From the NCBI GenBank assembly GCA_051294905.1, contig CM119385.1, positions 18,476,001 through 18,540,000 on the forward strand: 64,000 nt of DNA, written 5' to 3'. Of this stretch, positions 46,379 through 52,825 are shown piece after piece. Position numbers and translations under genes: made by a program. This DNA is from Botryllus schlosseri. Lineage: Eukaryota. The notes beneath the pieces are model-generated. The model saw only the letters and a list, made by a program, of their open reading frames with translations. It was not told the origin of the DNA and made no database searches. How positions within the stretch are numbered: the first letter of the stretch is position 1; each line of letters begins with the position of its first letter.

Positions 46379-48778
46379 TTAATCGTATAAATCGTCATCT
46401 TCGTTATCTTGGAAGGGGTCGCCGCTGCCCGACGCTCCGCTTTGAGAGTTGCCTCCAGACTGTTGGCCCCCGGGGAATTTGAACCCACCGAAACCTCGGC
46501 TTTGCTGAAGAGTTTGAGCGAACATTTCGTACTTCCTGATGTCCTTGTCGGAGACGGACCTGCGCGCATATTTCATAGCTTCTTCGAAATGCTTCCTGCA
46601 GATTTCAGGCACAGGATCAACGTCGTCATCCATAGCGGCATCCGCGTTGTCTCTCCTTTCGCGTTCCGCACGGATCTCAGCTTCGATGCTCTCTCGAATA
46701 GCGAGCTTGCAAGCACGTTGACAAATTTCAGTAAGATCAGCGCCGCTGAAGCCTTTCGTCACTCGTGCAATGTAATTGACATCCACGTCTTTCGCTACGG
46801 GAGATTTGCGTAGGTTTGCTTTCAAGATTTGAATGCGGGACTTGTCGTCAGGCAAAGGGATGTAAATAAGCTGATCGAGACGCCCAGGACGCAGGATAGC
46901 AGAATCGATAATGTCAGGCCTGTTCGTAGCTCCGATGATGAACACATTCTTCTTATTGCTCATCCCGTCCATCTCAGTCAGGATTTGGTTGATAACTCTA
47001 TCTGCGGCACCACCTGCGTCACCCACGCTACCACCACGGGACTTTGCGATCGAGTCCAACTCGTCAAAGAACAAGACACACGGAGCAGCCTGTCTCGCTT
47101 TATCGAAAACCTCTCTCACGTTAGCTTCGGACTCTCCAAACCACATAGTCAACATCTCGGGACCCTTGATGGAGATGAAATTAGCCTGGCACTCGTTTGC
47201 GATGGCTTTCGCCAGCAGCGTTTTACCGCAACCCGGAGGGCCGTAAAACAGCACGCCTTTTGATGGAGTCATGCCGAATTTCAAGAACTTATCCGGATGC
47301 TCCACCGGATACTGAACCAGCTCTTGCAGCTCGGTTTTGACACTTTCCAAACCGCCAATATCGCCCCATGTGATATTCGGCACTTCAACCACAGTCTCGC
47401 GCAAAGCGGACGGGTTACTTTGCGCCATCGCCCATCTAAAGTCTTCCATCGTGACAGCCAGATTATCCATCACTTCTGCATCGATAGTCTCCTCCTCCAA
47501 GTCAATAAGATCCATCTTGCCTCGGATTTGCTGTAGAGCAGCTTCGGAACACAACGCGGCCAGATCAGCACCAACATGACCGTGAGACTCATTCGCGACT
47601 TGCTCCAAATCTACGTCGTCAGCTAGCTTCATATTTTTGGTGTGGATTCTCAGAATTTCAAGTCTCCCAGTGGAATCGGGAATGCCTATGTCGACTTCCC
47701 TGTCAAAACGTCCGAAACGTCTCAACGCGGCATCGATTGAATTTGGCCTGTTCGTGGCTCCAATGATAACGACATGTGCCCTCTGCTTCAGGCCATCCAT
47801 CAAAGTCAACAGCTGCGACACAATCCTCCTCTCTACTTCGCCGTGAGTTTTCTCTCTCTTCGGAGCAATCGAGTCTAACTCATCGATGAAAATGATGGCG
47901 GGCGCGTTCTTCTCAGCCTCCTCAAAAGCTTTTCTCAAGTTAGACTCGCTCTCGCCTGCAAGCTTACTCATAATCTCCGGTCCGTTGATCAAGAAAAAGA
48001 AAGCGCCGGTCTCGTTAGCAACCGCTCTCGCAATCAGAGTCTTTCCAGTTCCTGGCGGTCCGTATAAGAGAATACCTCTCGGCGGTTTTATTCCGATAGC
48101 CTTGAAAAGAGCGGGGTGGCGCAAAGGTAGTTCCACCATTTCTTTAATCTGAGCCAACTGCTTTCTGCATCCTCCCACATCGTCATATCCTACTTCATTG
48201 AGAGCTTCTTCTTCATCGGCACGTTTGACCGGTTCACCTTCGCTGAAGATCACCGTATCCGGCGATACAATACAGTATTCAGGCGGATCAGTTTCCATGA
48301 CTTTAAATTCGACCGCACGCATGCCACCGCGTACCAAAAAGATATCTCCTGCCTTGATCGGCCTGTACGCTTCCAGGAAATACGGCTTCAAATACACGTC
48401 AAAGACATTCCCGGATATTCCTTCGATCGTATCGTCGATCGGTAGCACATGGATCTTTTTTCCGTACTTCACATTAGGGCAGGCTTGCACGCTGACAACA
48501 TCACCGAGGCGGACGCGGAGGTTATTACGCACACATCGATTGATGCAAAGCTTCTCGTTCGCTACGTTCTCATCGGCAAGCGCAATACATACGGTTTCTT
48601 TGCGCTTTTTGCCTTTCAGCAATACAGTGTCGCCTCTGAATAGCTGCAACTCATCCATCTTCTCCTGTGAAAGCACAACGACGCTGTTGTCATCGTTCGA
48701 TGTTTCCTCGACGATCAAACGGTTCGGTTTGACTTTCTCCTTGAGGATCGCCGTCGATAAATCCGGATTTTGAGCCAT
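46379..48778 (-). CDS. VCP: transitional ER ATPase p97/VCP/CDC48, single uninterrupted ORF, 799 aa
   Basis: N domain ([20 protein letters not shown]), two AAA domains ([43 protein letters not shown]) and C-terminal HbYX motif DDLYD. Confidence 0.99.
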
Positions 48779-49270
48779 TTCGAAATTTCAATGCAGGAAT
48801 CGAGCCTACAGATATACGTTTTACGTTATTTCTAAAAAAAATAAGAAAGAGTTAAGAAAAAATAATGGCGTGGTGTGAAGCTGGCGCCGCTGCCGACCGT
48901 ACCAACAAGAACATGGTTGAAACAGTGAAGAGCATTTTATCAAATTCCCGATCGCCAACACATTACACGTGTCCACTGTCCAGTGTAGCATTCTGTGACC
49001 AAGTGTCACGCATATTGACAGGCAGATTTCAAAAATGGGTAGGCAGTGCTGAGAAATGCGCAAAAGAAAAAAGAAATTGCTCACATAATCACATTGCAGT
49101 GATTTACGACCTAGATCATGCCTAGTCTGAGAGACAATGAATGTAAAATCAAGGTCACTGTGATCAATAATGGAATATCAAGCTGATAAAGAGAAAAAGC
49201 AGTATTAATAGCAAGATCAAGCGAAAGCTGCAATAATGGTCACAGACTCACAGATGGCTGACATAATCTC

Positions 49271-52200: not shown

Positions 52201-52825
52201 ATTTTACGCCTTCGATTTGATGAGGGCGAAGACTTTTGGACAAGTGCTTACTGACTGCAATACACGGGTCTTTCTGAAGGATGATGCCTGGTGTACCAGA
52301 GTCTTCTTTGGTATCGGTTTCACATGGCTCGGTCTTCTCTTTCTCCCTTAATCTTTTGAGCCTTTCCTTCTCCCTTTTTTCTGCTTCTCTCGTCTCCTCT
52401 TCGAGGTCTTCATCCTTTATTATACGAGCAATTTTTTTTCTTCCCGAAGTCTTTTTATTGCCCTTTTTCTTATTGCGTTTCTTCACGGCAGTTTTTTTCT
52501 TTGCAGTGCGTGTTCTAAGTTTTTTCTTGGCACTGCCAGCAACATCTACATCGGAGTCCGTTGATTGGTGATTCTTTTGTTCATTATTTTCATCTTCCGA
52601 TGTGTCAGTATTTTCATTTGTTGATTCAGATTCGTCCGATTGTGACTCGACACTTTGTTTAGCTTTGCCTTTTTGTTTTTTCCTACTATTAAAATCATCT
52701 TGATCGGTTGTTACATCTTCATCTTCCGTGTCCGTAGTCGACGACTCTACATAGCTAATTTTTTTTCTTTTACTCCTTGGGGCGTCATTGGAAGTCTTCC
52801 TCTTGGACCGTCGAAGACCGCTCAT
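49271..52825 (-). CDS. ATRX: ATRX-type SNF2 chromatin remodeller without ADD domain, single ORF, 1184 aa
   Basis: [66 protein letters not shown], acidic insert between the lobes, [41 protein letters not shown] are ATRX-subfamily motifs. Confidence 0.92.
   Translation of the reverse strand: [1184 protein letters not shown]

Follow-up and report, generated by a model that had tools for sequence, protein, structure and literature searches.

How did two neighbouring genes of an ascidian come to share one strand, a narrow gap and a complete lack of coding introns? This question is raised by a 64,000-nt stretch of the Botryllus schlosseri genome (contig CM119385.1, positions 18,476,001 to 18,540,000; hereafter the window), which carries a gene for VCP/p97 next to a gene for an ATRX-like SNF2 ATPase. 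We propose that the two probably form a spliced-leader operon of the Ciona type, composed of two functional intronless genes whose introns were lost gene by gene in a lineage-wide process. The open reading frame (ORF) listing places both genes on the minus strand, at 46379-48778 (799 aa) and 49271-52825 (1184 aa), with a gap of 492 bp between them, and these are the only ORFs longer than 400 aa in the window. On this strand the SNF2 (ATRX-like) gene lies upstream and VCP downstream, and each coding sequence is one exon. The first-pass annotation had described two single-ORF, same-strand genes 492 bp apart with intact frames, and the ORF list, Pfam and RNA contigs bear this out.

The downstream frame is assigned to VCP/p97 (CDC48, TER94) by its domains and by end-to-end homology. 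It contains CDC48_N, CDC48_2 and two AAA modules with lids, and it aligns over its full length with 120 homologues. Many animals' VCP proteins match it at 81-96% identity and 95-100% coverage, and VCP of Styela clava is 93% identical. The upstream protein contains SNF2-rel_dom and Helicase_C and no other Pfam domain. Its nearest named relatives are the ATRX-like protein of S. clava (54% identity across 1134 aa) and then those of Ciona and Phallusia, and the ADD domain is missing in all three. After these tunicate orthologues, the listed named matches are ATRX or DNA helicase, at E about 1e-230 and mostly with ATRX-type Pfam domains; no SNF2 subfamily other than ATRX is named among the listed matches. 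Judged by its helicase core, the upstream gene belongs to the ATRX subfamily. It was considered as ATRX proper, and this was ruled out because the N-terminal ADD (GATA-like plus PHD) domain is missing. An ADD-bearing canonical ATRX was found elsewhere in the genome, on contig C13 (L028:3472-9453, plus strand), as a single 1993-aa ORF that is 42% identical to the ATRX-like protein. Since ADD_ATRX is present in this paralogue and absent from the window gene, the latter is an ADD-less ATRX-like paralogue. Thus, of the names VCP and ATRX given to the pair at first, the former holds on Pfam and homologues and the latter has to be qualified.

The evidence for an operon comes from the ends of the two mRNAs. 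RNA reads were examined across 48450-53450; 3-6% of the runs were read, and raw depth was low. The template-switch oligo was joined straight to the genome at 53006/53007 in 23 reads from two libraries (11+4 in X21 and 8 in X23), which marks a capped transcription start for the ATRX-like gene and shows that this first cistron is not trans-spliced. The 5' untranslated region (UTR) that follows is about 181 nt long (52826-53005) and contains short upstream ATGs. Two runs gave ATRX-like transcript contigs, 48868-52847 and 48980-52980, that follow the genome colinearly, and the reads across the examined interval show no splice joints. Therefore, the UTRs of the ATRX-like gene are also intron-free. 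Its 3' UTR, which is also the presumed outron of VCP, occupies 48834-49270; the contigs reach 48868 and come within 35 nt of an AG at 48832-48833. A polypyrimidine tract lies at about 48834-48865, ahead of this AG, and inspection of the sequence found neither AATAAA nor ATTAAA in the 492-bp interval.

The AG at 48832-48833 is used by both genes. VCP contigs from two runs stop exactly at 48833, the A of the AG, and six X23 reads run past it into 22 nt of foreign sequence and then into the template-switch oligo. Together with the shared AG, the leader on VCP mRNA is 24 nt, ATTGGAGTATTTGGTTGTATTAAG. From the other side, three X21 reads with at least 28 untemplated A (T on the plus strand) show the ATRX-like mRNA to be polyadenylated at 48835, 0-3 nt after the AG, and coverage in a 3'-biased single-cell library peaks at 48784-49117. 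The spliced-leader acceptor of VCP and the polyadenylation site of the ATRX-like gene thus coincide to within 0-3 nt. Past the leader, the 5' UTR of VCP is 53 nt (48779-48831). Its 3' UTR, inferred from a 2648-nt contig, covers at least 46187-46378 and probably extends to about 46040.

The 24-nt leader is a genuine spliced leader. Its 22-mer occurs in 426 genomic copies, as compared with 0 for the reversed control; GT directly follows the leader in 101 dispersed copies and is absent after 325 of the 426. The VCP transcript of a second Styela-like species begins with the last 11 nt of the leader, and what follows in that contig can be aligned gap-free with the S. clava gene, beginning at the acceptor position, L017:17620. 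In a closer relative, the VCP transcript shows TAAG directly after the adaptor. The spliced leader of Ciona is 16 nt. A downstream CTGGACC...GGTC motif is common to four of six sampled copies of the B. schlosseri leader, with or without GT. This suggests that these four are relatives of a leader-RNA gene and not mRNA retrocopies. The only leader match within the window is at 3764-3787 on the plus strand and is followed by a GTAAG donor. A candidate spliced-leader RNA gene, comprising leader, donor and a short hairpin-forming stretch, can be placed there (3764-3789, plus strand); Rfam holds no family that matches it.

Some further features of the two transcripts were observed. In the 3' UTR of VCP, a block of about 70 nt (about 46095-46165, minus strand) is near-identical in the transcript of a relative (L027:2708-2775), of which the remaining UTR does not align. 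S. clava lacks this block, which may have a regulatory role. In the 5' region of the ATRX-like gene (52548-52954), X23, a bulk RNA library, has loose read ends without a match nearby. Variant positions are many in 52445-53008, where most X23 reads fit only partly, and the region is highly polymorphic. Divergent haplotypes and alternative 5' structures are both possible explanations of these loose ends.

How would two mRNAs be made from such an arrangement? One primary transcript would serve both genes. Transcription begins at the capped site, about 181 nt before the start codon of the ATRX-like gene. Polyadenylation of the ATRX-like mRNA takes place at the AG behind the polypyrimidine tract or within 3 nt after it, with no AAUAAA nearby, and VCP mRNA receives the 24-nt leader at the same AG, so that zero DNA separates the mature messages. 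The 3' UTR of the ATRX-like gene would then provide the branch region and the pyrimidine tract for trans-splicing of VCP. As proposed for Ciona, each primary transcript would probably yield either the upstream or the downstream mRNA.

This anatomy closely follows that of Ciona operons, in which cistrons are directly juxtaposed, upstream cDNAs carry their poly(A) tail after ...AG, and AATAAA is missing from 16 of 18 operons (PMC1488885). Satou et al. (2006) argued that each Ciona transcript may give one mRNA or the other, and pairs with juxtaposed anatomy gave dicistronic cDNAs (PMC1488885). Single-exon genes make up 38% of genes in Ciona operons versus 15% outside, and 60% of the 5'-most genes (Satou et al. 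2008, PMC2760879). The B. schlosseri pair shares with these operons the same-strand arrangement, the use of one AG as downstream trans-splice site and upstream poly(A) site, the lack of AATAAA within 40 nt, a first gene that is single-exon and not trans-spliced, one leader species, and unequal steady-state levels of the two mRNAs. It differs in that its host belongs to the order Stolidobranchia, the leader is different and, at 24 nt, longer, the ORFs are 492 bp apart owing to the long upstream 3' UTR, and both genes, not the first alone, are intronless.

Other systems resemble the pair less closely. In SL1-type operons of Caenorhabditis elegans, a minor class without intercistronic sequence, the upstream poly(A) site is also the downstream trans-splice site and processing is taken to yield just one of the two mRNAs, but canonical AATAAA is present (PMC1488885). 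The nematode and tunicate operon systems are probably convergent. Operons of Oikopleura dioica, also a tunicate, are resolved by a spliced leader and have upstream cistrons without AATAAA (PMC1488885), whereas their cistrons are separated by spacers of 23-30 nt, and the very compact genome shows intron turnover instead of whole-gene intron loss (PMC4122922). In B. schlosseri itself, fuhc-sec and fuhc-tm, another styelid pair on one strand, are separated by a short gap of 227 bp and were considered as a possible operon (PMC3691228). There, a spliced leader is missing from the downstream mRNA and each of the two genes has many exons, whereas VCP carries the leader and both genes of its pair are intronless. 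Further operon candidates were observed at two loci (L049 and L043; G000:C6:17300544-17310543 and C7:10226423-10236422), where a DEAD-box gene and a CCT gene, both intronless, are each accompanied on their own strand by an ORF of 156-216 aa, at a distance within 372-570 bp.

The lack of introns in the pair is part of a styelid-wide loss in many germline-expressed housekeeping genes. As a baseline, we counted by eye, in four housekeeping families, the loci at which the domain lies inside a protein-length open frame. Such single frames were found at about 13 of 24 AAA loci, 6 of 12 SNF2 loci, 4 of 9 CCT/HSP60 loci and 22 of 43 DEAD-box loci, and all 20 single-frame loci that were fetched contain ATG-initiated ORFs (388-1092 aa). 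Two or three of these 20 sampled intronless genes are flanked within 600 bp by an ORF of at least 150 aa on their own strand. The other 17-18 have no such neighbour, which suggests that introns were lost gene by gene, independently of a partner. Because about half of the housekeeping genes are single-frame, both members are expected to be intronless in roughly a quarter of neighbouring housekeeping pairs. The first-pass annotation had combined an operon with a single reverse transcription of dicistronic RNA. The operon idea agrees with the abutment of the ATRX-like poly(A) site and the VCP leader acceptor; the single event is unsupported and, since whole-gene intron loss is lineage-wide, it is not needed.

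The likeliest cause of the loss would be that genes recombined individually with cDNA copies of their own spliced mRNAs. Such mRNA-mediated intron loss has been discussed for tunicates (PMC4122922), and the all-or-nothing pattern in germline-expressed genes fits it. As in known cases of mRNA-mediated intron loss and orphan retrogenes (PMC3652778, PMC3548309), all introns are precisely gone from a sole-copy, germline-expressed gene. Unlike in those cases, the route cannot be proved by a surviving parent copy, poly(A) relic or target-site duplication, and about half of the genes in the sampled housekeeping families are affected. The literature searched contained no paper on lineage-wide intron loss in styelids. 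In the course of this survey, the canonical ADD-bearing ATRX on C13 was seen to be another ancestrally multi-exon gene without coding introns. Two adjoining CCT chaperonin genes on opposite strands (G000:C9:21387851-21392987) were also observed, one of them single-ORF and the other in two pieces.

A search of the genome for second copies (495 Mb, 219 contigs) found none of either VCP or the ATRX-like gene; the next matches are members of other subfamilies, 40-42% identical. The two genes are thus not retrocopies with living parents, and the earlier framing in terms of retrocopies landing side by side, which called for intron-bearing paralogues, does not apply. The S. clava counterparts, ATRX-like at L017:10001-13825 and VCP at 17677-20088, each coincide exactly with a single ORF and have the same order and strand as in B. 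schlosseri, with 3851 bp between the ORFs. This spacer contains no ORFs and no internal repeats that would mark a recent insertion. Its base composition, AT-rich and with a T skew on the sense strand, hints at most at transcription of the spacer. The VCP gene of Clavelina lepadiformis extends over 5.7 kb and is divided into at least 12 coding blocks by at least 11 introns, and the 10 kb on either side of it contain no ATRX-like match; a protein search with the Ciona ATRX-like protein found no Clavelina orthologue. The Ciona ATRX-like protein has three isoforms (1357-1363 aa), and these are only a hint of introns. The comparison of exon structure and adjacency in relatives, which had been suggested as a check, therefore came out differently in the two species, with an adjacent intronless pair in S. 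clava and an intron-rich VCP apart from any ATRX-like gene in Clavelina. From these gene structures, complete intron loss and adjacency are judged to be old in the styelid line and derived with respect to Clavelina, and intron loss in both genes would predate the split from S. clava.

When the S. clava and Clavelina loci were compared with the window by tblastx, only noise was found outside the two genes and no flanking gene was shared, and alignments of the UTRs and the junction between species gave no alignable sequence. Non-synonymous divergence (dN) of VCP from relatives is 0.03-0.066 and synonymous divergence (dS) is saturated; omega is 0.012 between two Styela species. A dN/dS check had also been suggested, and it yielded the low dN of VCP and no usable ratio for B. 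schlosseri. Two trivial explanations of the pair were rejected: pseudogenes, since the frames are intact, the genes are expressed and dN is low, and an artefact of assembly or contamination, since RNA support is deep and the pair is also present in S. clava.

Some of our observations weigh against the operon and the gene-by-gene loss that we propose. Because of the wide spacing in S. clava, conservation of the tight junction is not established. The poly(A) placement consists of three reads plus the shape of the coverage, and no contig or listed read from the 3-6% of runs read bridges the AG at 48833. Recombination with cDNA is deduced from the all-or-nothing pattern and was not observed. Both genes are expressed, and VCP contigs are 8-15 times deeper than ATRX-like contigs in two transcript assemblies, an excess that suits an internal VCP promoter as well as it suits differential processing. 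Such a promoter, inside the 3' UTR or the body of the ATRX-like gene, would make the genes two overlapping independent units, with monocistronic trans-splicing of VCP, abutment through compaction and polycistronic RNA that is not used. The missing bridging read and a GC-rich stretch 35-70 nt upstream of the VCP acceptor are consistent with this, and so is S. clava, in which VCP is trans-spliced despite lying 3.8 kb from the ATRX-like stop. However, the ends listed in 48834-49270 include none of the cap type (template switch), which is clear at 53006/7, although 15 loose ends are unlisted; the ATRX-like 3' end at the AG needs transcription across the boundary anyway; and Ciona pairs of like anatomy gave dicistronic cDNAs (PMC1488885). 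We therefore regard two independent units as rather unlikely, though as an explanation to be taken seriously.

The other alternatives concern the loss of introns and not the present transcripts. Both genes may have been stripped in a joint event, in which the RNA of an ancestral intron-bearing operon was cis-spliced and, still dicistronic, reverse transcribed into a cDNA that then took the place of the locus or integrated at another site. This would account for the operon-like junction, for the lack of any intron in both genes, and for a strand and order kept in two species with saturated dS, the pair being the sole microsynteny retained in the compared flanks; close same-strand partners are, moreover, a minority (2-3 of 20) among the sampled intronless genes. 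But no adjacent intron-bearing pair was found, VCP of Clavelina is intron-rich with no ATRX-like gene within 10 kb, nothing around the block resembles a leader relic, a poly(A) tract or a duplication scar, and 3.85 kb separates the genes in S. clava. Whole-gene loss is also so common that two independent losses in neighbours are unremarkable, and a joint event seems to us improbable. VCP alone could instead be an orphan retrogene, whose cDNA was inserted downstream of the ATRX-like gene and expressed by read-through and trans-splicing, the parent being lost afterwards and the ATRX-like gene losing its introns separately. The adjacency does look derived, as VCP of Clavelina is unlinked and intron-rich; VCP has no intron at all; trans-splicing would permit expression of a promoterless insert; and GT is missing after 325 of the 426 leader copies. 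Against this, no parental remnant was found in the genome, neither a leader relic ahead of VCP nor an A-tract past its 3' UTR was seen, the four of six leader copies with the common motif resemble leader-RNA gene relatives, and synteny decays so fast in tunicates that a changed neighbourhood proves little. We give this origin very little credence. At the borders of the block, reading by eye revealed no remains of a poly(A) tail or a leader and no target-site duplication, which is weak evidence given the age of the block.

A Ciona-type operon with gene-by-gene intron loss has several consequences. It extends the Ciona design, in which the poly(A) site is the trans-splice AG, to an ascidian of the order Stolidobranchia whose leader differs from that of Ciona and is longer. 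Because the design is present in a stolidobranch, it is probably old in ascidians and not peculiar to Ciona. The pair also lends itself as a small and well-defined test case, with an upstream gene of 3.7 kb, a single AG and a downstream gene that is essential and strongly expressed; it could be used to ask whether a primary transcript is processed into only one of the two mRNAs. The evidence for wholesale loss of introns from a large share of styelid housekeeping genes grows by two genes that were ancestrally multi-exon, and the pattern merits genome-wide treatment. Such pairs are easily fused or mis-modelled in genome annotation. A bolder scenario, which we think is a long shot, combines these elements: an old styelid operon was stripped of its introns in one step via cDNA of a cis-spliced, still dicistronic RNA, the ATRX-like gene serves as the discarded outron of the far commoner VCP message, and the choice between polyadenylation and trans-splicing at the AG sets the ratio of remodeller to p97.

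As for the rest of the window, the SLCO gene had been described as interrupted by introns, and SLCO/OATP at about 10466-12211 (plus strand) is indeed divided into exons, as is every OATP/SLCO gene genome-wide. Ten flanking small ORFs gave one Pfam match, a Myb/SANT-like DNA-binding domain (Myb_DNA-bind_5) in a 249-aa ORF at 22299-23048 on the minus strand, which is possibly transposon-derived. At 53515-53890, about 0.5-0.9 kb ahead of the start of the ATRX-like gene, there is a foldback-type element built from a 16-nt unit that is repeated in two inverted arrays. The arms are about 104 nt long, 83% complementary and 141 nt apart.

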